From Amoebophrya sp. A120 (lineage: Eukaryota > Protista > Dinoflagellata), in assembly GCA_905178155.1 (NCBI GenBank), contig CAJINV010000002.1, positions 12,896,204-12,960,203 of the forward strand: 64,000 nt of DNA, written 5' to 3'. Of this stretch, positions 573 to 64,000 are shown piece after piece (position 1 is the stretch's first letter; each line of letters starts with the position of its first letter). The translations under genes and the position numbers were made by a program. Under the pieces are notes generated by a model. That model saw nothing but the letters and a program-made list of their open reading frames with translations. It searched no databases and was not told where the DNA came from.

Positions 573-711
573 GTTCCAAAACTCAAATGTCCTCTTGCGT
601 TCTTCTTGCAGTCCTTGAACCTTTTTCGACGACCATGTTTCTCAACGACCACCCGAAGTTCATGCTGCAGATGGCGGCCAACTACAGCGTTCACGGAACG
701 AAGCGGTTGGC

Positions 712-3700
712 ATGTCGCATCTAGAGGGCCCGGTGAATAACTCCGCTCCCGACAGGCCTTTGTGCCTGTTGGTGGGCGCCAGTGCATCCTGCTCTTCCTC
801 ATCGCGATGGCGAACCTTGGAAGCCCCGCGGGCTTGGGTCGGCGACGCCACTCGTTCGACCCCGGTCTCCTGTCGGGCTACGGGCACGGCTCCGTCCAGG
901 GTACAATCGTCTTCGAATTTTGCAGAAACGGAAACCACAACGACCACTGAAAGAACGGGTTTACTCAGCTGCAAAAACGATGAAGGGCAACAGGAAATAA
1001 AACAGAAAATCAACATAAAGCTTCAGAGCAGACGAAGATCTCTTCACTTCCGCCGCGCCCGCCAAGCACGTGCGGAGGAGAAGTTTTCTGTCGCTGGAGG
1101 AGAGGGTGAAAATGGACACAACGTCGAAAACGGAAATCCATCGTCATCAACTTCTTCCAGTCGAACTCGAAGCGCCTGTTGCAGCAGGATAAGAGAAGGA
1201 AATCATGCTGATAAAAATAGTTGTTCTTCACAGTTCGCCAACAGCAGACGAACAGAAGATGATATCTTGTCGCACAGTAGTTCTTGTACGCGTACGGGAG
1301 CAACTACTACAACTAGCAGCAAGTCGTCCTCCGCAAGGAGAACGGAGCAGACGGCTGGTGGTGCTTCCTACGACCTGCCTTGGGGCGCCACACCCTTGGT
1401 AGCGTCGTGTTTGACGATTATGTCCTACTTGCGCCTGTTCGTCGAGGTGTTGCTGCGCTTTCTGTCCAGGAAGAAACGGAGAAGAAGGAGACCGCGAGGC
1501 ATCGAGCAGTTTTTATCTCTTCCCACGTCCTCTTCCAGAACAGAATCCCGCAGTACTAGGAATAAAACCTCAACAACACTAGTATCAGTGCCTTCTCTAG
1601 AAAGTAAAAGTTGTTGCTTCTCGCAGCAACCACCAGAAGCAAGATATATCAAGACCAGCAAGCTGGCACGTCGCACGAGCACTTCATCAAGAAGTTGTGC
1701 AGCTGCCGACGTAGTAGACGAAGCGGAAGTCGCGGGGAATAATTGCACTTCTAGCCAAACCTACGACTACGCGTGTGATCCCGAGGCGCTGGCGCTTCTC
1801 GCAGACTACACGCGCAGCGCGGAAGAGCCCGCGTGGTGCGGCAGTTGGAACAACTTCCGGATTCTACCGGAGAGGTTCATGATCTCGTGTCCTCCTCGGC
1901 GAAAGAGCAGTCTGACCGAACAGTCGACAACATCATGGACAGCCGCAGCAAGACATTTCTGCTCCGGAACAAGCTCCACGTTGTTCACAAGCCCCGAGGG
2001 AACCCCGAGCAGCAAGACGCCACTCTTGCACAGCCTCGGGCGGCTGTTTTTGTTCTTTTTGATGCTGTTCATCACGACGGACGGTTTCGTGCAGGTGAGC
2101 AAGAACGGTCAGATTTCCCTGTTGGGTCCGATCAACATCGACCCGCAGTGCGAGGACAACAACCCGCAGAACTGCTTCAGTCCGCAGATCCGTTTCCGGA
2201 ACAACGGAACCATCCAGTGGGTCGCGACCACGTTCGACTTCTACACGAACTCACTCGTGAACAACGGAAACACGGACTTCCTGCTGATGACAGGCACCCA
2301 GTTTTCCGACTGGTTGCTGAGCGACAAGAATCCGCAGGCCCCCGGCGGCTGGCTGGAGTACGGCAGCGAGGGCCGCGGCACCTTTCTGATCACCAGCGAC
2401 CGGAAGGTGTACCTGAACACCACTTTGTCCGTGTTCAAGGCGGTGGAGATGGGCAGCAGTTTGTCTGTGCGCGGCTTCGTCAAGATGGACAAGCGCCTGT
2501 CCGTGGACGACAAGACCTACTTTGGCGCGGAACTTTTCATCGGCGACCCGTCGAAGTCCGGCTCTCGGTCGCAGACCAGGTTCGGGCGCGGTAACCCGGC
2601 CGGGTTTCCGCCCGTTTTGAAGATAGACACGCAGCCGGACTCGCCGAACCGGTACAAAACCAGTATCGCGGACCAGGCGATCTTCGGCGACTCGCTGGAC
2701 ATAAGGAACAGCACGAACCTGGGGAGCTGTCTTTCCGTGCAGTCGTTCGCACGGCTGTACAACACGCTCTCCGTGAACAGCTACGTGCGGATCGGGCAGT
2801 ACCTGTCCGTGAAGTCCTACACGCGCATCGGGTCCACGCTCTCCGTGTACAGCCTCGTGCGGATCGGGTCGCACAGCGGTGCGACCTTTTCCATTGGCGG
2901 GGTGCACTCGATTTGGGGCTCCGCGACCTTCGGGTCCTCTTTATCGATCCGGAGGGCGATGAAGCTCGGCGGACGGTCCAAGGAAGCGGGCAGTCTGCGG
3001 TGCGCGCTGTCGCTGTTCGGGCAGATGCGGTACGGGCGGAAGATGTTTTCCGTCGCGGACTTCACGCTGCTAGGCTCGATGTTGTCGTTGCGAAGCTACG
3101 CGCGCCTTGGATCCAGCATCTCGCTGTACGGGATGGCGCGGCTCGGATCCAGTTTTTCCGTGCTCGATCTGGGGCATCTGGGTTCGAGTTTCTCGCTGAC
3201 GTCATTCGCACGGTGCGCCAGTTCGTTCTCCGTCTTCGGCGTGGCAAGACTGGGTTCCGCGATGTCGTTACTGGACTTCATCAGCTTGGGGACCGGAATT
3301 TCCGTGCGCGGATTCGGGCGTTTGGGAAGTAGTCTGTCGGTCTTCGGGATTGCGAAGGTGGCCTCCGCCTTCTCGCTGCTCGATTTCTCCAGCTACAGCA
3401 GCACCCTGTCGATCCGGAAGTTCAGCCGGCTCGGGTCTAGCTTTTCCGTCTACGGCATGATACGGATCGGGAGTTCGTTGTCGGCCCTGGACTTCGTGTC
3501 CCTGGGCAGCTCGCTCTCCTGCCGGACCATCGCGTGCTGCGGTTCCGCGCTATCTGTGTACGGAATTTCCAAGCTGGGTTCCAGTTTGTCGGTGCTCGAC
3601 ATGGTCACCATAGGCTCTGCGATGAGCGTCCGGTGTTTCGCGAGGTTAGGTTCAAGCTTATCGCTCTTCGGGCTCGCCAGACTCGGGTCGACCCTGTCCA

Positions 3701-4594
3701 TCCTGGACAGCGTGCATATTGGGTCCGCCATCTCAATACGGACGTACGCGCGACTAGGCAGTAGCTTGTCGTTGTTCGGAATCTCCAGAATCGGGAGCTC
3801 GTTATCCATTCTGGACGTTTTGAACGTAGGCAGTGCGATGTCGGTCCGTACCTTATTCCGGATGGGAAGCGCCTTCTCCGTGTACGGCGTGTCAAGACTA
3901 GCCAGTGGACTCAGTCTCCTAGACTGCCTGCACATCGGGTCGGCGTTGAGCGTGCGAAATTTCGCCAGGTTAGGCAGTGCCACGAGCGTGTTCGGTATCA
4001 CGAGACTAGCGAGTACGTTGAGCTTACTGGACTTCATGACGATGGGCAGCAGCTACTCTCTCCGGACCTGCTTGCGACTAGGCTCCGCGACTAGCGTGTA
4101 CGGTATGATGCGACTGGGGTCGATCTTCTCGATCCTGGACTTCGTGTCGCTCGCGTCCAGCTTCTCCCTCCGGAACCTGGCGCGGTTTGGTAGTTCCCTC
4201 TCCGTATACGGTTGCAGCAGACTCGGATCCGGGCTGTCGGTGCTCGATTTTGTGCACGTCGGCTCCGCCATGTCCATCCGCAAGTTCGCCAGGCTAGGGT
4301 CGAGTTACAGCGTCTTCGGCATCCTGAAGTGCGGGTCGAACCTGTCGATTCTGGATTTCGTCACGGTCGGATCCGCGATCTCGCTGCGAACGATGAGCCG
4401 ACTGGGAAGCAGTCTGTCGGTGTATGGCTTAAGCAAGTTTGGCAGCAGCCTTTCGGCGCTAGACATGCTGAACCTCGGCAGCGCTCTGTCGTTGAGGACC
4501 TTTGCACGCTTCGGGAGTAACTTCTCGGTGCTGAGCAGTTGGTGGATGGGCAGCAACTTGAGCGTCGCGGACTTCGTCGTGTTCGGCAGCAGCT
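712..4594 (+). CDS. Exon 1: low-complexity S/T/R-rich N-terminus, hydrophobic segments, non-repeat cap region, onset of the 36-aa repeats
   Basis: ORF 712..4605 reads into the first element. Regular repeats are established by about nt 3050. An in-frame TGA near 616 bounds the frame upstream. Confidence 0.8.
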
Positions 4595-7500
4595 TATCAC
4601 AGTGAAAAATGCCCCCCACCCCTGAAATTGCAAGAATTTGTGATGCGAAGTTTCCAAATGAAAGCTTTGTTTTTGTCATGCATGAAAGGAGTACGAATCT
4701 TTCTGATGCAGATTCTAGTCGTGTTTCGCATCGCTTGCATGACAAGCACCGCTCTTGCTGGGATCTATTGCAATACAAATTTTTGCTATTCACGATAAGA
4801 AATCTGTGATGCTGATACCCCACTTGGGTCTGTGCAACATCGTATTTTTTCCTTAGCGGCTGGTGCTGGACGATAAGGCGAGTTGCCAAGTAGCGGTGAG
4901 CATGCACCCACGGTGCGCTACTTGTGGACCACAACTCGTTTTATGTGAGCACCCCTTCCTGACCCCCAGGCGTTTCTTTTTACCATTGGTCTGGTAATCC
5001 TGTTCTCGGTCTGTTGGGGACCCCGTGTGGCTGTAGTCCGCTCTCCCATGCCGCTTGCCGTAGGTTCGTATCGTTCGTCTGTTAGGTCGTATTTACGTGG
5101 AACTTCGTGCGATTGCTCTCGGCCCTGTATTTCTTTTCTCTAGCCTCATACTTATCTTTTCGATTACTTATTTCCTTCTCTCTGATATTTTGCTTGTTGT
5201 TTTCTGTGTACTTACGTAAAGTTTTATTGGTTTACGTAACCGGGGGGCGGCTTGATGTCTGCGGCGGATGATGACAGTGTGCACATTCCTACAAATACAT
5301 GGCTGCCGGGGTGCTTCCCGGTTGGTCTAGTGTCGAAAATTCATTTTGGCACTGATCCGCTAAACACCTTGCTGCCAACCCCGCCCGCTCGGGGAGTAAT
5401 TATCTCTAGACAGGGCACCATCTGCGGTTGTCCTTTAGGGCGTTCGAGTCTAGATAGTGACTACCATGCGTAAATCTTCAATTTTGCGTGGGCTCCTGGT
5501 GGCTGCTTCCACCGTCGGGGAGTATAAACACACTAAACATAAGCCATTGACCACTGGGTCGCCGTGGTGCCGTGCCTGCATGCACCATCAGAAGTGCAAC
5601 GAGGTGCCAATCGTGTTTCCACATGTGCCATCAGAAGTGCATCGATTCGCGAGGGTCGTGAATGAATGAATGAATACTTTTTATTGGTTTTAGTAGGGCA
5701 TGATGCCAAAAGGGACGAACAGCCCGTAGACCTCCGATGTGATGCTGATACACGCAAGAGGGCGAATGTTTCTGTTGGAAAGGTTTGCAATACAAATGCT
5801 CCCAAGTTCGGGGGTGGGGGCGTTTTTCATTGTGATACAGCTACTCGATCCGCAGCTTCTCGCGGTTTGGGTCCAGTATGAGCGTCTACGGAATCTCGAG
5901 GCTGGGCTCCACGCTGTCCGTGCTGGACGGCGTCTTCTTCGGAAGTTCGCTGTCTCTGCGCGGGTTCGTGCGCATCGGTAGCTCCACGAGTCTATACGGG
6001 ATCGGAAGGATAGGCAGCGCGATAAGCGTCCTGGATCGGCTGTACTTCGGCTCCGCAGTGTCCATCCGGAACTACGCGCGACTCGGATCCACCATGTCCA
6101 TCTACGGCCTGGCGCGCATCGGCTCGGCCATGAGCGTGCTGGATTTCACGTCGATGGGCAGTAGCTTGTCACTGCGGTCGATCTGCCGGCTGGGCAGCAG
6201 CATCTCCGTGTTCGGGCTAACCCGGTTGGCGTCGACGATCTCCATTCTGGACGCCAGCAGCTTTGGCTCGTCGCTGTCTCTGCGATCTTTCCTGAGGCTT
6301 GCGTCGAACTTTAGCGTGTACGGAATGGGATATCTCGGAAGTTGCATGTCGACCATCGACTACTGCCACCTGGGATCGTCCATGTCGCTGCGGGGGTTTA
6401 GCAGAATCGCCGGCTCGAGCTCGGTGTACGGCATGGGGCGCGTCGGGTTGTCGATGTCCATCCTGGACACCGTCGGTGCCGGCTCCATGCTGTCGCTCCG
6501 CAACTTCGCCCGGTACAGCAGCACCCTCAGTCTGTACGGATTCACCAAGCTAGGCTCGTCTCTTTCCGTCCTGGACTACGTGAAGTGCGGGAGTACGTTG
6601 TCCTTGCGCAACTTCCTGAGAACCGGTAGCTCGATGTCCGTCTACGGTGCGTTCCTGCTCAGCTCTTCGCTTTCCGTGCTGGACTACGTCACGCTCAGCT
6701 CGTCGCTGACCATCCGCGGTTTCGGCCGCTTTGGCGACAGGCTTAGCGTGTACGGCATGACGAAGTTGGGTAGTTCGCTCTCCATTTGGGACTGCATGCT
6801 GGCCGGAAGCAGTCTGAGTCTGCGCAGCTACAGCCGATTAGGATCGGTGCTGAGTCTCTACAGCTGCGGCCGGTTGGGATCCTTCATGTCGGTTTTGGAT
6901 TTTGTCCACATCGGCTCCTCGCTGTCAGTCCGCTCGTTCACGCGACTGGGCTACGAAATCGCGGATTTCGCCGAGGAATTCGAGGAGTACGAAATGGTGG
7001 AGGAGGACATCTTAAACAGCCTGTACGGCAACGGAACGGACATGAACAGCACGAACTCGACGGACGACAACTCGACCAACTACGTGAACCAGTCGAGCTC
7101 CTACATCGTGGTGAATCGCGACCGAAGGAAGATGAGCCGCACCTTCAGCCTGTACGGGGTGAGTAGATTAGGCTCCTCCCTCAGTCTGCTCGACTTCGTC
7201 TCGCTCTCGTCCAGCAGCAGTTTGCGATCTTTAGTTCGCATGGGAAGCGCGTTGTCGATCTACGGCATCACACGAATCGCGAGCAGCTTCTCCATGTTGG
7301 ACTTCATCGCACTGGGGTCGAATTTGTCCTGCAGGGGGTACATGAGGTTATATCCAACAAAAAAACTGTGTTAGTGTAACTATCTTTGGCTGGCAGCTTC
7401 ACAAATTTGCTCTACATGACAGAGAAAATCTGTCATGCATGGTTTGTAAGGGAAAACACACATGAAAAGAGGACTTCATGGGTGTCTGGCATGACAGGTG

Positions 7501-10500
7501 TAACTCTGTTGCATGTTCTGCATTACAGAGTTACACTTACACAGTTTTTTTCTTGGATAGGTCAGGCTCCAGCTGCAGTGTGTACGGGATGACGCGGTTC
7601 GGAAGTTTATCCTGTGTAAAAACGTCCCCACCCCAGAGTTGTCATGCAAATCTGCATGCCAAAAAAGTTTCTCATGTGGAGCCCCATGAGAAGCATTTTC
7701 TAGTCGTGTTTTGGAATTTGTGATGCTATAATCAGCATGATATGCTAGATCTGTGATGCTTCTGAACTACCTCGACAGGATTGCACTACGAGGACAAACT
7801 TGTCATGCGAAACAACCAAAGCTGGCTAATTTGTCTAGCAGATTCCCCATCTTGACTCTGCTGTGGGGACGTTTTTACACAGGATAAAGTTCGTGCAGTC
7901 TGCTGGACACCATCGGCCTGTCGAGTTCTCTCTCCCTGCGGTACTTTTCGCGGTTGGGGAGCAGCGTCTCGATTTTCGGGCTTCTGAGGATGGCGAGCTC
8001 CATGTCCTTGCTGGACTTCTGCTCGATGGGAAGCGCTTTATCCCTGCGGTCCTACGCGCGGCTGGGAAGTTCCATGTCGGTGTACGGGATCACGTTCTTC
8101 GGGTCTTCTGCATCTTTATTGGACTTTTTCAGCTTGGGTTCGTCCGTGTCACTGCGAAACCTCGGTCGCCTTGCCTCGGGCTGCAGCGTCTATGGCATAA
8201 GTAGACTCGGATCCGTGATGAGCATTCTGGACGGGTTGTCGCTCGGCAGCTCGCTTTCTGTGCGCGGCTTCACGCGGATGGGAATCGCACTGTCGATCTA
8301 TGGGATGAGCCGACTGGGCAGCGTGATGAGCGTGAACGAGTACGCGTTCTTCGGCAGTTCGTTTTCATTACGCAGCTACAGCCGGCTCGGTTCCGGCGTC
8401 TCCGTCTACGGTTTCGCCAGGCTGGGGAGCAACATGTCCGTTTTGGATTGGGTGCACGCGAGCTCGACGCTGTCACTGCGCAGCTTCAACCGGTTCGGCT
8501 CCAGCATGAGCGTGTTCGGGCTGGCCCGGTTCGGATCCAGCCTGTCGCTGCTGGACAACTTCCAGCTCGGCAGCTCGCTGTCGGTCCGGACGTTCGCCCG
8601 GTTCGGAAGTTCGCTGTCCGTGTATGGAGTGTCAAAATTTGGGTCCAGTTTATCAACGCTCGACTTCTTCAACATGGGGATCCAGATGAGCGTGAGGAAC
8701 CTGGTGCGGTCCGGTTGCGCGTCCAGCAGTCTGTTCGGAATTTGCCGCATGGGGAGCTTCATGTCGATTTTGGACTTCATGAGCATAGGATCCTCCCTTT
8801 CCGTGCGCTACATGCTCAGGTTCGGCACGAGCCTGTCCGTCTACGGCATGACCCGGTTTGGCTCCTGCATGTCCGCGTTGGACTACATGCACCTGGGAAG
8901 CTCCTTCTCGACGAGAAGTTTTGTCCGACTGGGCTCCGTATGAAATGCAAAAGGTCTGGGTCTGGATGAGCGGCACACAACTGCGTTTTTACAAAATGTT
9001 TTGGAAATATTTTGAAAATATTGTGAAAATATTCCGAAAATATTTTGAAAATAGAAAAAATATTTTGAAAATATTTCCAACATATTTTGAACATACTTCG
9101 AAAATATTTTGAACATATTTTGAAAATATTTTGGCAATATTTTGAAAATAGTTTTCCATGATGTGGATGTTCGAAAGGAAAGTGAGTGCCTTGCGCCGCT
9201 CATCCAGACCCAGGCATATTTGCATTGGATACTCCGCGATGTCGTTGTACAAAACGATGGAAATCGGTAGGAACTTCTCGGTCCTGGACTACACCCATCT
9301 CGGCTCGGCCTTCAGTATTCGGTCCTGCGCGAGACTAGGGTCGGCGCTCTCGGTCTACGGCATGACAAGACTAGGCACGGCGATGTCGACACTGGATTAC
9401 TGCTGCCTCGGCTCCTCAATGAGCTTGCGCGCACTCGTCCGCCTGGGATCCGCGATGAGCATCTATGGCATGGCGAGACTAGGCAGCGGAATGTCGGTCT
9501 TGGACCAGCTGTCCATCGGGTCGAGTTTGTCGCTCCGGACCTTCCTCCGACTGGGTAGTGGTGGCGGATTTTCCGTGTACGGGATGGCCCGCTTCGGCAG
9601 TGCGTTGTCGATGCTGTGCTGCACCTACATCGGAAGTTCCATTTCCGTCAGGAATTTCGCCAGAGCGGGCGGGATCGTTTCCTCCGTGTATGGGATCACG
9701 CGCCTGGGCAGCTGCATGTCGATTTTGGATTTCGCTTGCCACGGATCAACCTTGTCCTTTCGCGGATTCAGCCGACTCGGAAGCAGCTTGTCGGTCTTCG
9801 GAGTCAGCACCTTGGGGAGCAGCATGTCGTTGTTGGATCTGGCGCACATCGGGTCCTCTTTGTCGCTGCGGGGGTACAAGAGGATAGGCAGCTCGTGTTC
9901 CATGTTTGGGCTGACCTATCTCGGCTCGCAGGTGTCCATGTTAGACATGTTCCAGCTCGGGTCCAGCCTGTCGATCCGCGGGTTTCTGCGGTGCGGCAGC
10001 AGCATCTCTGTCTACGGAATTGCGCGCTTCGGCAGTATGCTGTCTGTTTTGGACATGAGCATTATGAGCTCCTCGATGTCGGTGCGGAACATTAGCCGCC
10101 TCGGGTCCGGTTGCAGTGTGTACGGTTTGGCAAAGCTCGGCAGCTGCCTTTCCGTGTTGGATTGGCTGAGCATAGGTTCCAGCTTGTCCATGCGGTCCTT
10201 CGCCCGCATGGGAAGCGCGATGTCCGTGCACAAGGGCGTGGTGATGCGCGCGCCGGACAGAACGCACCTGGTCAGCGTCTACGGGATGGTGTTCATGGGT
10301 TCATCCATGAGCATGCGCAGCTACACCAGACTCGGCTCGTCCATCTCGATCTTCGGGATTGTGCGCCTGGGGTCCGCGCAGTCGGTGCTGGACGCGGTGG
10401 CGATCGGTTCCTCCCTGTCAGTCCGGTCCTTCTCCCGCCTGGGCTCATCGCTGTCCATCTTCGGATGCGGACATTTGGGGTCAGGAATCTCGATGCTCGA

Positions 10501-52500: not shown

Positions 52501-55500
52501 GGCCCGGGTTTGGGTTCCGGGCCCGGGTTTGGGTTCCGGGCCCGGGTTTGGGTTCCGGGCCCGGGTTTGGGTTCCGGGCCCGGGTTTGGGTTCCGGGCCC
52601 GGGTTTGGGTTCCGGGCCCGGGTTTGGGTTCCGGGCCCGGGTTTGGGTTCCGGGCCCGGGTTTGGGTTCCGGGCCCGGGTTTGGGTTCCGGGCCCGGGTT
52701 TGGGTTCCGGGCCCGGGTTTGGGTTCCGGGCCCGGGTTTGGGTTCCGGGCCCGGGTTTGGGTTCCGGGCCCGGACACCTCCGCTGGCCCGTTGACAAATC
52801 CCCGAAGGGTTGAGCAGCCCCTAAATCTGTGCCGGATTTGTGATGCGAGAGTTGCAAACGTGCCCCCTTCATTGTTGCGGTTCTTGCATCAAAAATTCAT
52901 GTAACAGTTCAGAATGTAACGTTTGAGAACGCCATATCCGCCTCGGTGTTGAACTTTGCGAACCTCGGGTCCAGCTGCAGTCTGCGCATGTACGCGAAGA
53001 TCGGGAGCAGCCTGAAGACTTTCGGCAGAATGGACTACGGAACTAACATCAGTATCCTGGACGCCGCGATTCTCGGGTCCTCTTTGTCCATTCGCGCTTC
53101 GGCCACCCGGCTCGGCTCGGGCGCGTCGGTGTTCAACTGCCTGGAACTCGGAACGTCGTTGTCCCTCCGTGCCTTCGCGAAACTCGGGAGCGGACTCAGC
53201 ATCTTCACCTCCGGGAGACTCGGTAAGGCTGCCTCGGTGCTCGACTTTGTGCGGCTGTCCTCCTCGATGTCTCTGCGAAGCTTCGGGCAAGCAGGATCGA
53301 AGTTGTCGACCTTGGACTTTTTGCAGTTGGGCTCCTCTATGAGCCTCCGCTCCTACCTCACCTGCGGTAGCCGTGTGTCGGTGTTGGACTACCTCACCAT
53401 GGCATCCAGCATGTCGCTAAGAAACTACGTGCGGTGCGGTAGCAAAGTCAGCGTGCTCGGCATGGGACGCATTGCCCCGGAATTCAGCGTGATTGACTAC
53501 CTGCAGGTGGGAAGCACGATGAGTTTAAGGAGCGCTTGCAAGATGTCCTCGAACTTTTCCGTGGTTGACATGGTTCACTTGGGCTCGGCGCTGTCGCTGC
53601 GAAACTTCTGCCGCGTCGGCGAGGCCGCCTCCGCGTTCGACTTCCTCTCTCTGGGTTCCGCTCTGTCGGTGCGCGCCTTCTGCCGCCTGGGCAGTGGGTT
53701 CTCCGTCGAAGGCGCCAAAGCGAGCTTTGCGGGCTGCCTGTCGGTTCTCGGAGAAGTTTTGATCGGAAGCTCCTTGTCAGTCAGGTCGTTCACACGAGTC
53801 GCGGGCACCAACGCCTCCATCCTGAACTTTGTGCAGCTCGCATCCGCCCTTTCGGTTCGCGGCGTCACACGAGTGGGCAGCGGCTGTTCGGTTTTCACCG
53901 TCGCGCGGGTGCAGAAATCGATGTCGGTTCTGGATCAGTTGCACCTCGGCAGCGCGTTGTCCGTCCGCGGCACCGTGCGGTTCGGCGACAACTTGTCGAC
54001 GCTGGACTTCGTCACATTGGGCAGCACCTTGAGCATCCGGGGCCTCACCCGGTTCGGCAGCAGTGTCTCCCTGCGGAGCTATGTGCGGCTTTCTAGCAGC
54101 TGCAGCCTATTCGGTAGGGCCGTGATCGCGACGAAGAAAGCCGATACAACCCTCTCAGTTTTGCAGCAGGTGGCCGTTGCGTCGTCGCTCTCCGTCCGGT
54201 TCTCGACGACGATGGGCAGATCCGTTTCCGTCCTGGATTTCCTGAACCTCGGATCGGCACTCTCCGTTCGCCAGTACGTGCGGTTTGGGTCCGGCTGCTC
54301 GATCGGACAGAAGGTCGACCTCGCCGACACCTTATCCGTGCTGCAGGCCGGCGCGCTCGGCTCCAGTCTGTCGATTCGCAGCTTGGCGCGGTTCGGACGG
54401 GACATATCGGTCTTCGACATGCTTTCGCTGGGCAGCTCGCTTTCCGTCCGCGGTCACACCCGGATCGGCAGCTCCATTTCCGTGTTCGGGCGCGCGATCC
54501 GGTCGGCGCCAGACCAGATGAGTGTGATTGACCACCTGTTCCTGGGTAGCAGTCTGTCCGCGCGCAACATGATCCGCTTCGGCAGCGTGTGCAGCATCCT
54601 GAACTACGTGCAGATGGGATCCGCGCTGTCGATCCGAAACGTGCTGCGACTCGGTTCCGGTCTCTCCATGTTGCACCCGGTGCAAAACCGCGGCGCGCGG
54701 TTCTCCGTCTGCGACGCCTTCCACCTCGGAAGCTCGTTGAGCACGCGGTCGCGGATCCGGATGGGGTCCACGCTTTCCGTTCGGGCGATGGTGAAAATGT
54801 CCTCCACGATGTCGACGTTTGGTGTGTTCCGGGCCGGAAACGTGCTCTCCGTTTTGGCGGCAACCAGTTGTGGGTCCAGTTTGTCGCTCCGCGAATTCAT
54901 CAAGCTCGGGTCCCGCATGTCGATCCTGGACACGCTCACCCTCGGCAGTTCCTGCAGTATCCGGGCATACACCAGACTCGGCTCGGCGCTAAGCATGGTG
55001 TGCAGCCAGGGCGTCGCCGGACGAGTTTCCCTTCTGGATCACGCCAACTTGGCCTCGGCGCTCTCTGTCCGATCGGTGATGCGCCTGGGACAGCAGGGCC
55101 TGTCGGTTTTGGATTTCTTGCAGCTAGGGTCCACACTGTCCCTGCGCGGGAACAGCAAAGTTGGCTCCACGTTGTCCGTGTTGGAGAAAGTGCGTCTGGG
55201 CGGGCAAATGTCGATTCTGGATTGCCTCGTCCTCGGATCCTCCATGTCGTTGCGAAACTACGTGCGCGTTGGCAGTGCTCTTTCCATCATCGAGTCTGTG
55301 CGCGCGGCCGGCCAGATGTCCCTGCTGGACTACTGCCAGCTCGGCTCCAGCCTCTCCGTGCGCAGCGTCGCCGCGCTGTCGGGCCGAGCCAGCATTCTCG
55401 ATTTCATGGCCATGGGCTCGTCCCTCTCGGTTCGAAGCTTCGAGCAGGCCGCGAGCTCCATTTCCATCAAATCGATGAAGCGGCTCGGAAGCAGCGTCTC

Positions 55501-58500
55501 TGCGTTCTACAACGTCCAGACGGCGGGCGCCACGTTCAGTGTCCTCGACATGGTCACCCTCGGTAGCGCCGTTTCCGTCCGGAACCCCTTGCGGTTTGGA
55601 AAGCGAATCTCGATCACAGACTACTTGACGCTCGGGTCGTCCTTGTCCTTGCGCACCTACATGCGCGTGGGTTCGGGTGTGTCGATCGTGGAGAGCGCAC
55701 GGCTCGCGGTCTCCCTGTCGCTGTTGCAGCAGGTGACGCTGGGCAGTGCGCTGTCTCTGCGGAGCCAGGTGTTCGCCGGCGGAAAGACCAGCGTCCTGGA
55801 CTGTTTGACCCTTGGCTCCTCCCTGTCGATTCGCGCCTACGGCAGAATTGGTTCCGGCTTCAGCGTCGCAGGCAGCGTCCGCGCGGCCGGTGGTGCGCTT
55901 TCGGTCCTGGACCAGCTGCAACTGGGTTCGTCTCTCTCTGTTCGAAGCCTGATTCGGGGTGGCGACGCTCTGTCCCTGCTGCAGTTCGTGAATCTCGGGT
56001 CGAGTTTGTCCTTGCGCACCTACACGAGATTCGGTTCGGGCTTCTCGGTGCTGGAAAAGGCACTGGTTCAGGACAGTCTGTCGATTATTGAGCAGCTGGA
56101 GGTCGGGTCCTCGCTTTCCCTGCGCGGATTTATCAAGGCGGGCGACAAGATCTCCGTCCTTTCGTTCGCGCAGTGCGGATCGGGTCTTTCCATTCGGAAC
56201 TTCGTCCGCATCGGAAGCAGCATGTCTTTGTTCGGCACCAGCCGGTGCGCAAGCATTCTCTCGGTGCTCGACACCACGCACTTCGGTTCGTGTCTGTCCA
56301 CCCGCGAATACGTCCGACTCGGCAGCGCCTTATCGGTCCTGGGTGGCGGGCTTATGGGCGCGCGGCTCTCGGTCTTGAATTCCATCAACCTGGGGAGCAG
56401 CTTCTCGCTCCGCGGCGTGTCCCGCTGCGGCATGCGACTTTCCGCGCTGGATGCAGTCGCACTGGGAAGCAGCCTGTCGTTGCGCACCTGTGCCTATCTG
56501 TCCGCGCAGGCCTCCGTGCTTGACTTCGTCCAGTTGGGCTCTACGCTCAGCCTCCGCGGCGGCACGTGCAAGATCGGAAAGGCGTTCAGCGCCCTGGACT
56601 TCGCGCAGTGCGGCAGCTCTATGAGTCTGCGCTCCTTCGGCACCGCGGGTAGCAACGTGTCTGTGCTGTCCTACGTGAATTTGGGAAGTGCGATTTCGTT
56701 ACGTGCGGCCGCGCGCATCGGCTCTGGCTTGTCAGTTGTCAGAACCTCGCAGATCGGCGGGTCTTTGTCCATCCTTTCGCAGGTGGCCGCAGCGTCGACG
56801 CTGTCTCTGCGGTACTTCGGCAACGCGGCCGGCAGCGCTTCCGTCTTCAACTTCCTGCAACTGGGTTCCGCTCTGTCCCTCCGGGCCACGGCCCGGCTGG
56901 GTTCCGCCTGCAGCGTGTTGTGCCAGGGCAGACTGGGCGACCGGGTCAGCGTCCTCGATGCAATCGTGATCGGCTCTTCCATGTCTCTGCGTGGGTCCAC
57001 TATTCGGATTGCCGACCGGCTCTCGGTTTTGTCGTTCGCACAGCTGGGCTCTAGCTTGAGCCTGCGGAACTTCTTGCGTCTCGGCAGCGCTGCGTCGCTG
57101 TTCGGCGATGTCAGAAGTGGGGCGAAGACGTCCGTCTTGGACTGCGTCACCCTCGGGTCCTCGGTTTCCCTGCGGGCGTACTCCAGACTCGGCGCACACC
57201 TGTCCGTTCTCGATTTTATCCACCTTGGATCGAACGTCAGCATTCGCAACATGCTCCGCCTCGGAAGCTCGTGCTCCGTGTTCTCGCAGGTCCGCCTCGG
57301 TAGCACCATGTCCGTGATCGATAACACCCTCTATCAAATGCAAAAGTGTCTGGGTCTGGAAGAGTGCATGCTTGTCTGGCCTGACTCTTAATAAATCTGT
57401 CATGCACGTTACCCACGTTACCCAGAAGGCTCGGCTGAAGTTGGGTTTTAGGATTTTGGCTTCCAAAAATCGACAGGGGTCCTCTGGACTTCCAAAATCC
57501 TAAAACCCAGTTTATCATGCAGAAAAATAGGCAACACCTAGAAGGAGCTCGAAAAATTTGTCATGCTGTGCCAACACAACTTGTGGCCTCCTCATGATAT
57601 TAGTACAAGTACGCCGCCCAGCATCACAAATTTATTCCAGACCCAGACCTATTTGCAGTTCATACCCTCTTCGGGTCGACGATCAGCGTTCGTGCGGTCA
57701 CCCGGGTCGGATCGGCGCTGTCCGTGTTCGGGAGGCAGACCATCGGTGGCAGTTTCTCTGCGCTGTCGTACGCAGCGCTGGGCTCCTCGATGTCGCTCCG
57801 CTCCTTCGCACGCGTGGGCCAGCGAATCACCGTGTTCGACTACTGCCTGCTGGGCTCGTCCCTTTCCGTGCGCGCCGCGTGCCGCATCGGGAAGGGGCTC
57901 TCGACGCTTGACTCCGTGGTCCTCGGGTCCGCGTTGTCCCTTCGCCAGTGCTCGACCTTCAGCGGGATGGCCAGCATCTGCGACGCCACCAGCCTGGGTA
58001 GCAGTTTGTCGGTGCGATCGATGTTGAAGTTGGGCGTTTCCGGTGTTTCCGTGATGGAATTTGTCGGCATGGGATCTGCGATGTCCCTTCGCTCGTACGT
58101 GCGAATCGGATCGGCGCTGAGTGTGTTCAAGGACGTGAAGTGCGGCGCGAAGCTCTCCGTGCTGGATTGCCTCTCGCTCGGGAGTACTTTGTCGGTCCGC
58201 GAAACAGTGCGGTTCCGCGAGGCCCTCTCCGTGCTCGACTACGTTGCTCTTGGCAGTGCGGTCTCCCTCCGGGCGCAGGGTCGCATTGGCTCGGGATTCT
58301 CGCTCTTCAGCACGGCGCGGTGCGGTCTGACCTTGTCCCTGCTGCAGCACGCGCACGTGGGTTCCAACTTGTCCGTCCGCTCGTTCGGCCGGGTTACTGG
58401 TGCCTTCAGCGTCCTGGATGCGACAACGCTGGGCAGCGGACTGTCCATAAGACACGTGTATCGTGTGGGTCAGGATCTCTCCGTGCTCGATTACGTCACC

Positions 58501-61500
58501 ATCCAGTCCAACATCTCGGTGCGCGCGATGGCTCGCAGCGGCGCCAGCTTGTCACTGCTCAGCTACTCCTCCCTCGGAAGCTCGCTGAGTCTCCGGTCCC
58601 GCGGCTGCTTGGGCGGTCGCGCCAGCGTGTTTGATTTCATGCACCTGGGATCGTCCTTGTCTCTGCGCGGCAACACCGGCGCCTACGGGAGCAAGATGTC
58701 CGTTTTGGACTTTTTGCAGATGGGCAGCTCGTTATCCGTGCGTGGCATCCAGCAGATCAGCAAGGCCGTATCGGCCTTTGATTTCGTGGCGGTATCGTCC
58801 ACCATCTCGGTGCGCGCGTACAGCAGAATCGGCAGCGGGTTCAGTACGTTTGGCTACGCGTCTCGGGTGTCCGCGCAACTTTCGGTGCAGGACTTCGTGC
58901 TGGGCGGCAGCAGCATCTCGCTGCGCGCCTTCTCGCGCATCCCGGGCAACACATCCATTCTCGACTTCGCCTGCGCGGGGTCGAGTCTGAGCATCCGCGC
59001 GTCCGTACGCGCAGGAAGCTCGCTTTCGGTCTTCAGCCGTTCGCAACTCGGTGGGGGCTGCAGCGTCCTGGAAACGGTCTGCCTGGGCAGCACGGTCTCT
59101 CTGCGTGGTCGAGTGAACCTCGGCGAGAGGTTCTCGATGGTCAACTTCATGCACGTCGGCAGTACAATCTCTCTGCGCTCTCTCCCTTTTGCCAGATTGG
59201 GAGGTGCGTTGTCCACGTTCGACGCAGTTCACCTCGGAAGCAGTTTGTCGCTGCGCAATTTTGCGCAGATGGGCGCCAGCGTGTCCGTCGCGGACTTCCT
59301 GTCGCTCGGCAGCTCATTGTCTCTTCGCTCTTACGGGCAGGTGGGCAAGAGCTTGAGTCTGTTGGAGTTCGCAGCACTGGGATCCTCCCTTTCGCTCCGC
59401 TCCTTCGCTCGCACCGCTGCTGGCGCTAGCGTTCTGGATGCCGTTACCTTGGGAAGCTCGTTGAGCATCCGCTGCATGGTGCGCGGTGGTGCGGAGCTGT
59501 CTGCGCTGAACTTCAGTGCACTGTCCAGTTCTTTGTCCATGCGAAGCTTCGTCAGGACTGGGTCGGCCATGAGCATCGCCGGCCTGAAGAACCGCCAAGA
59601 CTCGATGTTGTCCGTGATGGACGCAGTGGCGCTTGGCTCCTCGCTTTCCGTCCGCGGAAACTTGGCTCGCTTGGGCAGCACGCTGTCCTTCTTCCAGGTG
59701 CTGCAACTCGGATCCGCGATGTCGTTGCGGGCGTACAGCCGTGTCGGCAGCGGATTTTCGGTGTTCTTCAAGACGCAGCTCGGCGAAAACATGTCCGTGC
59801 TCGACTTCGTGAACTTCGGAAACGACCTTTCCGTGCGCAGCGAGGTCAACATGGGCGGGAACCGCCTCAGCGTCTTGGATTACGCGTCAATCGGAAGTGT
59901 GGTCTCCCTGCGTCAGTTCCTGCGCCTCGGCAGCGCCATGTCGGTGTTCGGGAAATCTTTGCTGGAGCACTCGTTCTCCATCATCGAGCAGTCTACCATC
60001 GGTTCGAGCGTGAGTCTCCGCCACATGGGACGCTTCGCCAAGTCGATCTCGATTTTCGATTTCTTCTCGTGCGGTAGCTCGCTCTCTTTGCGGCAGTTCA
60101 CGCGAATCAACGACGGCATGCTGTCGGTTGTTGGACGTGCTGGAGTTTCGACTGACGTGTACTTCAGCGTCGCGGATTACTTGCGGTTGGGCAGCTCTTT
60201 CTCGCTGCGCCAGCTGGCACGGCTGGGCGACGGCTTGTCTGTCCTCAACTACGCGGCGTTGGGCAGCACGTGCAGTTTGCGCGCGGTGATCCGCATGGGC
60301 AGCTCGATTTCCGTGCTCGGCGTCCCCCGGCAGCCGACGCAGATTGGCGCGCGACTCTCAGTTCTCGCCGCGGTCACCATCGGCAGTTCGCTGTCGCTCC
60401 GGTCCTTCGGAAGGCTCTACGAGGGCGTTAGCTTCCTGAACTTCGGAACGCTCGGGTCGAGCTTGTCGGTCCGTGCGGCCGCCCGCCTCGGGTCTTCGCT
60501 CTCGTTCACGCAGAACTGCAGACTTAACGATCGGATCTCGCTCCTGGACTGCCTCGCGATTGGAAGCTCGTTTTCGCTCCGGCAAGTAGCGCGCATGGAC
60601 AAGGGGTTTTCCGTTCTGGACTACGCCACCTTCGGGTCCACGTTTTCACTGCGTGCGTTCACCCGGCTCGGATCCTCCCTGTCGGTGAAGCAGGGCTGCT
60701 TCCGCACGGGCTCGGGATTCTCGGTTGCGGATTCTCTCCACAGAATGCGCCTGGGATCCACTCTGTCCGTCCTCGACGCGGTCAGTCTCGGAAGTTCGTT
60801 GTCGATGCGCAGCAGAACTTACAAGGGCGTTGGAGTGGCGTCGGTCCTGAACTTCCTCACCTTCGGGTCGGATGTGAGCGTGCGCAGCTTCGTGCGGCTT
60901 GGCAGCATCATCTCGGTGCACGGTATTGTGTCCCGATTCGGTTCGCTCCAGGCCTTGTCCGTGATTGACAGCATGACGCTCGGTTCCTCCATCTCGGTGC
61001 GATCCTTCAGCTACTTGACCGGAACCAAGTTGACAATGCTTGACTTCGCGTCCTGCGGTTCCGCGATGTCGCTCCGCAGCTACGCCCGCATGGGGTCGAC
61101 CTTCAGTGTGACAAATAAACTGTTGTTAGGCGAGAAGTTATCCATCGCGGACCTCAGTTCGCTTGGCAGCACTTTGTCCATCCGCCAGTTCGCGCGCACG
61201 CACTCTCGCGTCAGCGTGCTAGACATGACCCGACTGGGCTCGTGCCTTTCGGTCCGCAACTTTGTGCGCATCGGGAGCGGATTGAGCTGCATGACCGCGG
61301 CGAAAGTCGGCGCAAAGCTGAGTTTGATGCAGCAACTGACACTCGGGAGCAGCTTGTCCATTCGCACCATGACCATGCGGTTCGACCAGCAGGGGAAGAT
61401 GTCTATCCTGGACTACCTCCACTTGGGCAGCAGCGTGTCAATGCGCAACACCGCCGTGACGGGCAAATCCTTGTCCTTCCTCGACCAACTGGCGCTGGGT

Positions 61501-63597
61501 AGCTCGCTCTCCCTCCGGGCGCATGCGCGCATGTCCAGCGCGCTGTCCGTGGCCGGGCCGGGGCTCGCCCGCCTCGGCGGAGCGATTTCCGTGTTCGACT
61601 TCATGCACCTGGCAAGCTCACTGTCGATGCGGGACCACCTGATTGGTGGGGCGCGCCTGTCATTGATTGACTTCTTGCAAATGGGCTCCACGTTGAGCGT
61701 TCGTAGCGTGCAGCGCACCGGGAAAAACCTTTCCGTCCTCGACTTCACCTCCTTCGGAAGCAGCTTGTCTCTGCGCAACACGATGAGAGTCGGCAGCTCG
61801 TTCAGCGTCTTTGCGAAGTGCATTTCCGCGCCGGTGAATCTGAGCGTATTGGATTCGTCCTTCCTCGGCAGCTCGGTGAGCGTGCGCCAGCTCGCGTATG
61901 TGGGCGGGCGCTATTCGATGCTGGATACTTTGATGTTGGGAAGTGCGCTGTCAGTTCGAGGCCTTTCGCGCCTCGGCTCTGGGTTCAGCGCCGCCGGCCT
62001 CGTGCGACTTGGCAGCGTTTTGCAGTGCTCCGTGGTCGATTTCCTCCACCTGGGCAGCTCCGTCTCCGTGCGGTCTGTTGCCAAGATGCAGGATAAGATC
62101 TCCGTGTTGGACTTCCTCAAGATCGGGTCGTCGCTCAGTGTGCGCAGCGGCGCTCGCCTCGAAAAGGCGACTTCGGTGCTGTGTTTCGCGCATTTGTCGA
62201 GTTCGTTGTCGCTCCGACGGTTTGGACAAGTCAGCGGGGATGTTTCCGTGTTGGATTCGATCGCGCTCGGTTCATCTCTCAGTCTCCGTTCCGGAATGCG
62301 GATTGGTTCCCGGCTGTCCCTGCTCGACTGCCTGCACATCGGCTCCTCCATGAGCGTCCGCGCGGCCTGCCAGTTGGGCAGCTCCCTTTCCGTGTATGCA
62401 GCCACCCAGCGCCGCACTTCCGCCGTCGGGAATTGTGCGTCCGTCCTGAACCAACTGCACCTGGGAAGCTCGCTTTCGGTCCGCAGTGTGGCTCGTTTCG
62501 GCAGCACGCTGTCGGCCTTCAGCTTTGCCACGATGGGTAGCTCGATTTCCATCCGCACTCTGTTGCGCCTGGGGTCGTGCTTGTCAACTTCCGAAAACTT
62601 CGGACTTGGTGGTGGCCAGATGTCCATATCGGACCACCTGCATGTTGGCAGCGGTTTGTCCCTCCGTGGATACGCAAATTTGGCTGGCAGACTGTCAACC
62701 TTCGATTTCCTGACCCTCGGGTCGTCCATCAGTCTCCGGACTTACGCGCGCCTTGGCAGCAGCATGAGCGTTCGCGAACGCGTGAAGGTATCGGATGCGC
62801 AGAAGAAGATGAGTGTGATGCAGGCAACCACCATCGGAAGCTCCTTGTCGATTCGTTGCTTCGCGCGCTGTGGTGCAGTGTCCGTTCTCGACTACGTTCA
62901 GCTCGGGTCCAGTCTCTCCATTCGGGCAGCCACTCGCATCGGCGAAGCGGTCCAGCAGACCACCTCGCTGCGTTTGGTGGCAGAGTGCGGGTCCGCGATC
63001 AGCATTCGTGGCATGCTGCGGTTGGGATCGTCTCTTTCGACCTTCTCTCGCTGCATGCTTGGGTCCAGCCTGAGCATCCTGGACAGCATCCACATCGGCA
63101 GCTCCGTCTCGCTGCGGGCCTGCTCGCGGTATAACGCCCGCGTGAGTGTGTTCGACTTCCTCTCTCTGGGAAGCGCCATCTCCGTGCGGGTTCACACCCA
63201 CTTTGGGTCGGCGCTCAGTGTGTACGGGCAAGTGAAGCTTGTCGACCGACTTTCGGTTCTCGACCAGTTTGCGCTCGGTAGCACCCTGTCCACCCGCGTG
63301 CTCGCGCGGTGCGGCAGCAATCAGTCCCTGCTCGCCTTCGGCTGCCTCGGCAGCTCCTTGTCGATGCGCGTGGTCCGCATGGGCTGTCGGTTATCGCTCC
63401 TGGACTTCTTGCAGACGGGAAGCAGCATGTCGTTGCGCGCCTACGGTCGCGTTGGGTCGGGCTGCAGCGTTTTGGCCGGTTTCCGATGCGGCTCAACCGC
63501 GTCGGTTCTCGACTTCTTGCACATTGGCAGCACGTTTTCCACGCGCAACGTCGGGCGATTCGGCTCCGCGCTCTCGGTACTGGACAACACCTTCTTC
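712..63597 (+). CDS. Giant multi-exon gene (at least 11 exons, 3'-incomplete) encoding a >=18,194-aa 12/36-residue repeat protein; putative secreted or membrane-anchored beta-solenoid, function unknown
   Basis: join(712..4594,5843..7350,7565..7607,7892..8938,9237..22151,22432..28310,30470..35563,37522..47264,47486..51637,52942..57331,57670..63597) = 54,582 nt, divisible by 3. All 10 frame transitions agree with intron lengths mod 3, and each junction rebuilds the repeat motif. Exact splice points can slide within each 5-bp direct repeat. The start codon is uncertain. Confidence 0.88.
4595..5837. mobile_element. Introner 1 (non-canonical intron, 1243 bp)
   Basis: TIR of about 35 bp: TATCACAGTGAAAAATGCCCCCCACCCC on the left, GGGGTGGGGGCGTTTTTCATTGTGATA on the right. 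Direct repeat CAGCT at 4590-4594 and 5838-5842. Confidence 0.92.
5843..7350 (+). CDS. Exon 2, repeats plus an acidic, N-glycosylation-rich insert
   Basis: Junction reads FGSS-Y-SIRSFSRFGSSM; same frame as ORF 5878..7374. Confidence 0.88.
7351..7559. mobile_element. Introner 2 (209 bp); can also be read as a GT-AG intron 7347..7560
   Basis: 31-bp TIR TATCCAACAAAAAAACTGTGTTAGTGTAACT with 2 mismatches. Direct repeat GGTTA (7346-7350) versus GGTCA (7560-7564). Confidence 0.9.
7565..7607 (+). CDS. Exon 3, micro-exon of 43-48 nt between two introners
   Basis: Encodes GSSCSVYGMTRFGS, the exact repeat segment missing between exons 2 and 4; frames match on both sides. Confidence 0.85.
7608..7886. 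mobile_element. Introner 3 (279 bp)
   Basis: Perfect 24-bp TIR TATCCTGTGTAAAAACGTCCCCAC. Direct repeat AAGTT at 7603-7607 and 7887-7891. The TIR resembles that of introner 1. Confidence 0.93.
7892..8938 (+). CDS. Exon 4, 36-aa repeats
   Basis: Junction reads FGS-S-CSLLDTIGLSSSLSLR; frame of ORF 7954..8943. Confidence 0.9.
8939..9231 (+). mobile_element. Introner 4 (293 bp), family A, forward
   Basis: TIR TAT..AATGCAAA..GTCTGGGTCTGGATGAGCGGC. Direct repeat CTCCG at 8934-8938 and 9232-9236. Interior is a TTTTGAAAATA array. Confidence 0.93.
9237..22151 (+). CDS. Exon 5 (12.9 kb), very regular 36-aa repeats
   Basis: Junction reads LGS-A-MSLY; frame of ORF 9158..22156. Confidence 0.92.
22152..22426 (+). 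mobile_element. Introner 5 (275 bp), family A, forward
   Basis: Same ends and interior type as introner 4. Direct repeat GTCGT at 22147-22151 and 22427-22431. Confidence 0.93.
22432..28310 (+). CDS. Exon 6, regular 36-aa repeats
   Basis: Junction reads SSLS-L-LDFVQLG; frame of ORF 22431..28394. Confidence 0.92.
28376..28557. repeat. Three tandem 60-bp repeats inside introner 6
   Basis: TGGACTTCCAAAATCCTAAAACCCAATTTCAG..GAGC..TCCAAAATTCGACAGGGGTC recurs at a 60-bp period; a remnant is present near 30190-30210. Confidence 0.9.
28591..29686. repeat. Degenerate 14-bp G-rich minisatellite (CCCGGGTTGCGGGT)n
   Basis: Directly visible; about 1.1 kb with very few A on the + strand. Confidence 0.95.
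30470..35563 (+). CDS. Exon 7, diverged repeats
   Basis: Junction reads LRSAA-RCGSFMSVF; frame of ORF 30485..35632. Confidence 0.9.
35564..37516. mobile_element. Introner 7 (1953 bp) carrying a 70/74-bp satellite
   Basis: Perfect 24-bp TIR TATGACACAAATAACTCAACCAAA. Direct repeat ACGTC at 35559-35563 and 37517-37521. Confidence 0.93.
35755..37326. repeat. Satellite of alternating ~70 and ~74-bp units containing the palindrome GGGTTCGAACCC
   Basis: Unit TTCGAGGCCCGAACCCGCATGGCAGAGCCGGGGTTCGAACCCGGGTCC followed by either AAGGGCCGAGCTTTCGCCCAGG or GCCGGCCGGACTTTCGCC..CAGA; roughly 21-22 units. Confidence 0.93.
37522..47264 (+). CDS. Exon 8, diverged 24/36-aa repeats
   Basis: Junction reads VLSHV-SLGSTLSIR; frame of ORF 37498..47337. 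Confidence 0.92.
47265..47480 (-). mobile_element. Introner 8 (216 bp), family A in reverse orientation
   Basis: Its left end (TATCCAATGC...TTTACTTTCGAACATCTAC) matches the reverse complement of the right end of introners 4 and 5. Direct repeat AGCAC at 47260-47264 and 47481-47485. Confidence 0.93.
47486..51637 (+). CDS. Exon 9
   Basis: Junction reads RVGS-T-LSVIQR; frame of ORF 47442..51677. Confidence 0.9.
51638..52936. mobile_element. Introner 9 (1299 bp) carrying a 19-bp satellite
   Basis: TIR of about 40-44 bp, TATGGGATTCTCACACGTTACATTCTCAACTGTGACATGA, imperfect. Direct repeat TCCGC at 51633-51637 and 52937-52941. Confidence 0.92.
51973..52770. repeat. Perfect 19-bp tandem array (CGGGTTTGGGTTCCGGGCC) x42
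   Basis: 798 bp / 19 = 42 copies; no variant copy seen. Confidence 0.96.
52942..57331 (+). CDS. Exon 10
   Basis: Junction reads FGVS-A-SVLNFANLG; frame of ORF 52946..57391. Confidence 0.9.
57332..57664. mobile_element. Introner 10 (333 bp), family-A-like TIR with an introner-6-like interior
   Basis: TIR TATCAAATGCAAAAGTGTCTGGGTCTGGAA on the left, TTCCAGACCCAGACCTATTTGCAGTTCATA on the right. Direct repeat CCCTC at 57327-57331 and 57665-57669. Confidence 0.9.
57670..63597 (+). CDS. Exon 11; the gene probably continues beyond the window
   Basis: Junction reads IDNTL-FGSTISVR; frame of ORF 57724..63609. The stop of that ORF lies inside the next TIR. Confidence 0.88.
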
Positions 63598-64000
63598 TAT
63601 CAAATGTAAAAATGTCTGGGTATGGAAGAGCTCCAGAAAAGCTCCAAGTTATTCTTTATTATTTCCGTGAGATTTCCGTGAGATTTACAAAATATTTGAA
63701 ACAAGTGGAAAAATAATTCTTTTTTATTTCCGTGAGATTGAAAAAGAATTCTTTTTTATTTCCGTGAGGTGGCCGCCCCAACTTTCCTCGGATGAGAGAA
63801 GTTGAGGTGGCCGCCCCAACTTTCCTCGGATGAGAGAAGTTGAGGTGGCCACTTCAACTTTCCGCGGATGAGAGAAGTTGAGGCGGCCACACCAACTTTC
63901 CTCGGATGAGAGAAGTTGAGGTGGCCACTTCAACTTTCCTCGGATGAGAGAAGTTGAGGTGGCCGCCCCAACTTTCCTCGGATGAGAGAAGTTGAGGTGG
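63598..64000. mobile_element. Introner 11, 5' part only (truncated by the window)
   Basis: Begins TATCAAATGTAAAAATGTCTGGGTATGGAAGAG, nearly identical to the left end of introner 10. The predicted direct repeat is TCTTC; the right end is not visible. Confidence 0.8.
63766..64000. repeat. 38-bp tandem repeat (GAGGTGGCCGCCCCAACTTTCCTCGGATGAGAGAAGTT)n, about 6 copies visible
   Basis: Period 38 (63766, 63804, ...), contiguous units with minor variants. Confidence 0.93.

Follow-up and report, generated by a model that had tools for sequence, protein, structure and literature searches.

A probable 104-kb gene for a giant dodecapeptide-repeat protein in Amoebophrya sp. A120, interrupted by 13 introner elements

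Do the long open frames that follow one another in a stretch of the genome of the parasitic dinoflagellate Amoebophrya sp. A120 belong to one gene, and what would such a gene encode? The stretch, hereafter the window, comprises 64,000 nt of contig CAJINV010000002.1 (C2; positions 12,896,204 to 12,960,203 of the forward strand), and its plus strand presents a succession of long open frames in which the frame shifts at each gap and an element lies in every gap. Ten inverted-repeat elements with 5-bp target duplications break a single plus-strand frame here, and the window very probably covers the first two thirds of a gene that is about 104 kb long and runs from C2:12,896,915 to about 13,002,540. 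We also hold with good confidence that this one gene has 13 introner elements removed from its RNA and specifies a glycofibril-type fibre protein of about 29,400 codons.

Reading frame and extent of the gene

The frames of the exons were set solely by cumulative arithmetic from base 712, and both frame and repeat phase were computed exon by exon from the coordinates (Table 1; positions are those of the window, or of its extension downstream where marked as extended). Under these frames all 11 exons in the window are free of stops, and after subtraction of the 10 duplicated repeat copies they sum to 54,582 nt, that is 18,194.0 codons from base 712. A first-pass annotation of the window had claimed that excision of each element with one 5-bp repeat joins the exons in frame, and this proved right at all ten junctions with the intron lengths it listed (1248, 214, 284, 298, 280, 2159, 1958, 221, 1304 and 338 nt, each being the element length plus 5), as did its stop-free total of 18,194 codons and its statement that the frame is still open where the 11th element begins. 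In every case the open frame terminates 4-83 nt into the following element, therefore a retained element would truncate the protein. Removing an insertion together with one target duplication restores any open reading frame (ORF) automatically, so the arithmetic alone is no proof of splicing.

The exons encode repeats with a GSxxS motif, whose 36-nt phase is identical on both sides of nine of the ten junctions in the window (a match by chance is expected about once in 12); the earlier claim was that the repeat register continues at every junction. Over the whole gene 10 of 13 junctions retain the phase, among them the junction at introner 11, where frame and phase both carry on across a run of N.

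The gene extends about 42 kb beyond the window, with three more introners (11-13) and short exons. The 14 large exons amount to 85,426 nt (28,475 codons, ~3.0 MDa); all are stop-free, and their G+C content at third codon positions (GC3) is about 0.8 throughout. Downstream of introner 13 there are about ten short exons, at least some of them with GT..AG introns, which form a tail of roughly 900 codons and bring the whole gene to about 29,400 codons (~3.1 MDa). The stop, which the first-pass annotation had proposed to find by extending the contig, was reached at about 106,336 in extended coordinates, after a Peptidase_S74 domain. Its inference of a single very large polypeptide (at least 18,194 residues, about 1.9 MDa or more) is supported, with a size that is an underestimate. 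By the density of the motif, repeats start near 2.5 kb and finish near 105.5 kb, and there are none on the opposite strand or in the flanks.

Anatomy and families of the introners

Each of the ten elements in the window opens with TATC/TATG and closes with GATA/CATA, and in nine of them the termini form inverted repeats of 31-47 nt with >=80% identity, whereas an indel of 1 nt interrupts the inverted repeat of element 4. In the whole gene, inverted repeats of 30-80 nt (>=80% identity) are found in 12 of the 13 elements. The 5-nt direct repeat is exact at 12 of 13 elements (9/10 in the window), and that of element 2 matches at 4/5 bases. Across the six possible registers a GT..AG intron could be obtained only for element 2, and the other 12 elements are unreadable as GT-AG, and a gene finder restricted to GT-AG would miss the structure; the earlier remark was that it would split the gene into about 10 hypothetical ones. 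When introner 8 is folded as RNA, its two ends pair in a long terminal hairpin (z = -9.9).

Seven of the 13 introners have a common end type (TATCMAATGCAAA..GTCTGGGTCTGG). The interiors of introners 4, 5, 8 and 12 are 70-78% alike and lie in both orientations, and a search of the genome located this interior at full length only within this gene. Since the target repeats of these four differ, repeated local insertion rather than segmental duplication is suggested. Family-A ends are present on at least 9 other contigs of the genome. For elements 1-3 the summed depth of DNA contigs is, as a rough figure, hundreds to thousands of times the exon depth, with about 2,000 times for introner 3.

The family-A introners also hold AT-rich palindromic arrays of AAAATATTTTGAAAATATT-like units (8988-9155, 22206-22330 and 47382-47426), and three of the larger introners hold GC-rich satellites, at 28591-29685 (14 nt, ~79 copies), 35751-37326 (70 nt, ~21.5 copies) and 51973-52773 (19 nt, 42 copies, 100% identity). 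Because of these satellites, stop-free ORFs occur in all six frames inside introners 6, 7 and 9. The perfect 19-nt array of introner 9 may be very young or may be an assembly product. The 70-nt unit of introner 7 (35836-37327) contains GGTTCGAACCC, which resembles the T-arm of a tRNA. ARAGORN made a single call in the window, with a four-base anticodon (28951-29050); it falls inside the satellite of introner 6 and is probably spurious.

Removal of introners 1 and 4 from RNA

The read evidence covers the stretch 4300-9300 and comes from three runs, namely X1 (RNA-type), X4 (an estuary metatranscriptome) and X9 (DNA-type). X1 is labelled as the same organism; its match to the exons is 100%, and it has no depth at all within introns 1 and 4. 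A 611-nt X1 contig joins 4589 straight to 5838 and so skips 1248 nt, and contigs of both X1 and X4 connect 8933 with 9232, skipping 298 nt, where the 5 ambiguous letters are the direct repeat. Introners 1 and 4 are thus precisely removed in RNA as the element plus one repeat copy, and the check with non-canonical splicing that the first-pass annotation had recommended has for these two introners yielded the joints 4589|5838 and 8933|9232. No clear spanning contig was found for junctions 2 and 3 among the contigs over 4300-9300. The end of exon 6 was also used to scan metagenomes for transcripts crossing the 2.2-kb introner; the 68 relatives returned had 30-56% identity, and none was usable.

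The excision of an element with one direct repeat recalls the pointer-guided elimination of ciliates, which raises the alternative that the elements are removed at the DNA level and not from RNA, the more so as the RNA status of X1 is a guess. We regard this as highly improbable and have rejected it. The DNA-like depth of X9, from the same organism, is about 27 over exons and introns alike; this run crosses the exon/element borders and thus keeps the elements at single-copy depth, with neither of the two joined forms seen, whereas the RNA-type contigs lack introners 1 and 4. To our knowledge, nuclear dualism is not known in this group. Moreover, RNA-seq junctions support introns of this kind in A120 (PMC7789003).

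Another possibility is that the locus is a decaying pseudogene, in which an ancestral giant ORF was struck by 13 transposon insertions and the frame is only apparently restorable. Such restoration is automatic for any insertion with a target duplication, as said above; the 13 introners here stand against a paralogue with an uninterrupted frame of 26,593 codons; and the read support reaches 2 of 13 junctions. Despite this, we consider a pseudogene very unlikely. The 85 kb of exons contain no stops or frameshifts, although several of the inverted repeats have diverged by 10-28%, and GC3 and repeat conservation are uniform over all exons. The exact absence of introners 1 and 4 from the RNA contigs also speaks against decay. 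Furthermore, the X4 contigs, which stem from an environmental relative, show 19 differences from the window, 14 of them synonymous third-position changes (p = 4e-4), therefore the frame is under purifying selection.

The predicted protein and its family

The repeat has a period of 12 residues within a 36-residue super-repeat, with the consensus LDxxxLGSxLSxRxxxRLGSxxSVYGxxRxGSxxSx, and the autocorrelation peaks at lags of 12, 24 and 36 (identity 0.33-0.50). Alignments of 38 and 96 segments show its serine columns to be invariant or nearly so. The 14 exons contain 1,574 G[ST]xx[ST] motifs, and the gene has about 2,300 dodecapeptide repeats (GSxxSx7). Exon 1 starts with a low-complexity region rich in Ser, Thr and Arg; a hydrophobic segment lies at about 2040-2085, and then come an N-terminal domain of ~130 amino acids and the first 12-residue repeats. 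GC3 in this exon climbs to 0.7-0.9 only from about 2000. At the other end, the last two exons encode a Peptidase_S74 domain (PF13884, 43.6 bits against a cut-off of 22).

The genome holds exactly four matches to PF13884 (on C2, C13, C3 and C11) and four to the N-terminal domain (2029-2700), and each giant locus carries one of either kind in the correct orientation, none being internal to the present locus. The hydrophobic segment followed by FV(L/Q)VS...LLGP(I/V)(N/D)IDP is shared with the three paralogues, and all four genes retain both the SDxRxK motif and the intron inside the S74 domain. The products of the same-genome paralogues are 44-57% identical to that of this gene (about 50%). Their uninterrupted open frames measure 26,593 codons (C13), 18,586 (C3) and 11,458 + 7,502 (C11), so proteins of such size are the norm for the family. 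This gene is one of the two longest of the four paralogues, and it looks to be the most interrupted, as judged by the lengths of the open frames (introners were counted in this gene only).

Ahead of the hydrophobic segment, at 712-2030, 350-450 codons are open and rich in Ser, Thr and Arg, as they are in paralogues L014 and L016, and in the present gene their GC3 is only 0.4-0.6. This region could be either a low-complexity cytoplasmic N-terminus, with a signal-anchor topology, or a conserved non-coding feature.

A Pfam search of the repeat exons gave no match, nor did a profile search of PDB sequences. A search of representative proteins returned 1,160 relatives with a best identity of 36% and lengths of up to 4,226 amino acids; a near-identical entry was not found in it, which is uninformative on the public gene model. 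The ten members checked have almost no names, except for one IMG name, 'bactofilin family / baseplate gpV'. A homologue search with exon 5, which sees only proteins of 2.4-7.5 kaa (thousands of amino acids), found one distant match, a 2,783-residue NCBI protein with PF13884, and is likewise uninformative on the public annotation of the locus. Clusters from the ESM Atlas were unnamed, labelled viral and of low recognition, and were not used, and a reading of the frames as plain bacterial or prokaryotic ORFs was rejected.

The first-pass annotation recognised no family for the protein, which is out of date. CryoSeek TLP-12, a glycofibril from pond water, has a trimeric stem in which chains of GSxxSx7 repeats interweave as a triple beta-sheet; S2 and S5 bear large O-glycans, and 18 repeats take up 14 nm. 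The strongest candidates put forward for it come from Amoebophrya sp. A120, where proteins such as A0A8J1ZHD7 (19,853 amino acids) reach about 20,000 residues and carry an ICA domain at the C-terminus, and about 150 candidates are reported in six alveolates (10.1101/2025.09.30.679562). Both sequence-level hallmarks of the family, the GSxxSx7 repeat and the C-terminal S74 domain, are present here, and judging from these features the gene product very likely belongs to this TLP-12 / Amoebophrya dodecapeptide-repeat family. The likeness extends to the conserved G1, S2 and S5, to the thousands of copies and to the genome itself, which is the same. Unlike the published candidates, this paralogue has about 29,400 instead of about 20,000 codons and extends over 104 kb with 13 introners in it, and gene structure does not figure in the discussion of the preprint (10.1101/2025.09.30.679562).

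Discussion

In the model that we propose, a coding sequence was hit by 13 copies of non-autonomous inverted-repeat transposons (introner elements), which would have made 5-bp target duplications on insertion, and near its 3' end it would also have several conventional GT-AG introns. Each introner would be excised together with one repeat copy, and pairing of the inverted ends probably guides the process, as was proposed for A120. The predicted protein would begin with a low-complexity region, pass through a hydrophobic segment (signal or anchor) and a small N-terminal domain, continue with ~2,300 dodecapeptide repeats and end in a Peptidase_S74 domain with SDxRxK. By homology with TLP-12, three chains would nucleate at the C-terminal chaperone and interweave into a triple beta-sheet shaft, from which the chaperone would then cleave itself off. 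The two serines of each repeat, whose conservation is what we observe, may bear large O-glycans as in that fibril. If exported in the same manner, the product would be an extracellular, glycan-coated, trimeric fibre of about 2 micrometres, the length being derived from ~2,300 repeats at 18 per 14 nm.

We infer that the remaining 11 introners are removed as introners 1 and 4 are, which would give one continuous transcript and chain. For the full statement, that all 13 introners leave a single pre-mRNA of ~104 kb to give one chain of ~29,400 residues (~3.1 MDa) and that an intron-generating transposon has hopped locally in the gene, we lean only slightly towards acceptance.

Several points weigh against the proposed model. 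Splicing was seen at 2 of the 13 introner junctions (1 and 4; 2/10 in the window) and in part through X1, whose nature as RNA is, as stated, a guess; none of the reads or contigs over 4300-9300 shows one continuous transcript. The satellite-bearing introners of 1.3-6.2 kb (6, 7, 9 and 11) lie outside this read-covered stretch, and the published analysis of A120 introns was limited to introns of 40-1000 bp (PMC7789003). Introner 11 encloses a run of 4,276 N, perhaps an assembly gap, and continuity at this place rests on scaffolding and on the agreement of ends, direct repeat, frame and phase. As GC3 is low before about 2000, the ATG at 712 is a putative start. As to the fibre, AlphaFold monomers from internal-repeat alignments had a predicted local distance difference test score (pLDDT) of 43 (all-beta, with 10-residue strands) and 40 (helical), so that they are unreliable and contradict each other, and TLP-12, a freshwater pond fibril, is tied to the family by repeat pattern and density fit (10.1101/2025.09.30.679562).

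A further alternative is that the locus gives two or more separate products, for example from transcripts that end in the 2-6 kb introners or start past the N run. The contigs show no continuous transcript, the big satellite-bearing introners may splice poorly, and the N run lies inside introner 11. We nevertheless judge such a partition to be unlikely, as the locus has one N-terminal signal and domain and one C-terminal S74 domain, and shaft pieces lacking the latter would not trimerise, as far as S74 chaperones in general are a guide. Moreover, the repeat phase is continuous over junctions 6, 7 and 11, and every element adds an in-frame stop within 83 nt. One gene with one product is the reading that we prefer.

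The introners are of the kind described in A120, where 66% of the introns are non-GT-AG with support from RNA-seq, and where introner elements have inverted repeats of 8-20 nt and direct repeats of 3-5 nt, so that a hairpin could bring the exon ends together (Farhat et al. 2021, PMC7789003). They share with these the non-GT-AG borders, the inverted-repeat hairpin, the short direct repeats over the borders, the multi-copy nature and, for introners 1 and 4, the removal in RNA data. The difference is that the inverted repeats here are 30-80 nt long, the direct repeat is always 5 nt and four elements of 1.3-6.2 kb go beyond the range of 40-1000 bp in that paper. The introners of Micromonas, Aureococcus and free-living dinoflagellates (PMC9860276, PMC12130899) are likewise transposon-derived, with inverted repeats and target duplications, but they create or co-opt canonical GT-AG borders.

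At the protein level, a PF13884 domain with SDxRxK at the end of a long beta-rich repeat shaft is also the plan of the C-terminal intramolecular chaperone of phage endosialidases and tail fibres and of MYRF. The present protein differs in that it is encoded by a eukaryotic nuclear gene, its shaft is 100-fold longer and made of another repeat, and the domain is split by an intron; its self-cleavage is predicted. As a predicted multi-megadalton single chain it compares with titin and PKZILLA-1; its predicted ~3.1 MDa is in the range of titin and below PKZILLA-1 (reportedly about 4.7 MDa), and its monotonous structural repeat would set it apart from a modular enzyme or a spring.

The intron type was published in 2021 (PMC7789003) and the protein family, together with the structure of its fibre, in a 2025 preprint (10.1101/2025.09.30.679562), and neither kind is new. 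What is specific to this locus is a paralogue of ~29,400 codons whose expression would require 13 non-canonical excisions and in which one introner family appears to have hopped repeatedly, so that two published oddities of one organism meet in a single gene. With 13 introners from 214 nt to more than 6 kb, all needing precise cuts for one 3-MDa protein, it would be a demanding natural test of intron removal in Amoebophrya. It also extends the predicted size range of the TLP-12-type family to about 29,000 residues, and automated GT-AG models will fragment such genes. If the single chain is real, it would be among the three or four longest predicted eukaryotic polypeptides, with a trimer of about 9 MDa before glycans, and introners 4, 5, 8 and 12 would show an intron-generating transposon hopping locally inside a single gene.

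Feature coordinates and neighbouring sequence

Table 1. Positions of the exons, introners and C-terminal features of the gene (ext., extended coordinates; DR, direct repeat).
Feature	Position	Strand	Remarks
Exon 1	712..4594	+	frame open 619 to 4605; putative start codon
Introner 1	4595..5837	.	1243 nt; DR CAGCT at 4590-4594 and 5838-5842
Exon 2	5838..7350	+	starts with the second repeat copy (5 nt); X1 and X4 contigs cover it
Introner 2	7351..7559	.	209 nt; DR GGTTA/GGTCA; sole one readable as GT..AG (7347..7560)
Exon 3	7560..7607	+	43 nt net
Introner 3	7608..7886	.	279 nt; DR AAGTT; terminal bases match 20/20; very high-copy family
Exon 4	7887..8938	+	covered by RNA contigs
Introner 4	8939..9231	.	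293 nt; DR CTCCG at 8934-8938 and 9232-9236; family A
Exon 5	9232..22151	+	about 4,306 codons of 12/36-residue repeats
Introner 5	22152..22426	.	275 nt; DR GTCGT; family A
Exon 6	22427..28310	+	stop-free frame
Introner 6	28311..30464	.	2154 nt; DR CCGCC; 14-nt GC-rich satellite, about 79 copies
Exon 7	30465..35563	+	stop-free frame
Introner 7	35564..37516	.	1953 nt; DR ACGTC; 70-nt satellite, about 21 copies
Exon 8	37517..47264	+	stop-free frame
Introner 8	47265..47480	.	216 nt; DR AGCAC; family A, orientation opposite to introner 5
Exon 9	47481..51637	+	stop-free frame
Introner 9	51638..52936	.	1299 nt; DR TCCGC; perfect 19-nt repeat, 42 copies
Exon 10	52937..57331	+	stop-free frame
Introner 10	57332..57664	.	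333 nt; DR CCCTC
Exon 11	57665..63597	+	stop-free frame
Introner 11	63598..69,818 (ext.; left end 63598..64000 in window)	.	DR TCTTC; N run 64,001-68,276; first 30 nt of both ends identical
Exon after introner 11	69,819-74,038 (ext.)	+	open frame
Introner 12	74039-74284 (ext.)	.	DR GCGGA
Exon after introner 12	74,285-98,522 (ext.)	+	8,078 codons
Introner 13	between 98,522 and 98,843 (ext.)	.	DR ATCTT
Exon after introner 13	98,843 to about 101,243 (ext.)	+	open frame
Penultimate exon	L012:1545-1796	+	SDRRVK motif
PF13884 Peptidase_S74 match	L012:1868-2335	+	43.6 bits

Around the coding exons, positions 1-600 of the window form an AT-rich upstream region with a direct repeat of about 100 nt (TATTCTTGTTTTAGTTTTTACTT...). 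A 3' intron of the gene (L011:7600-8030; extended 101,600-102,030) contains tandem units of ~33-40 nt (CCACCAGGACTTTTTTTGCTCCGTGGTG-like). Just past the gene, at L012:4500-6500 (extended 108.5-110.5 kb), units of ~360 nt form a GC-rich tandem repeat whose three plus frames are all open.

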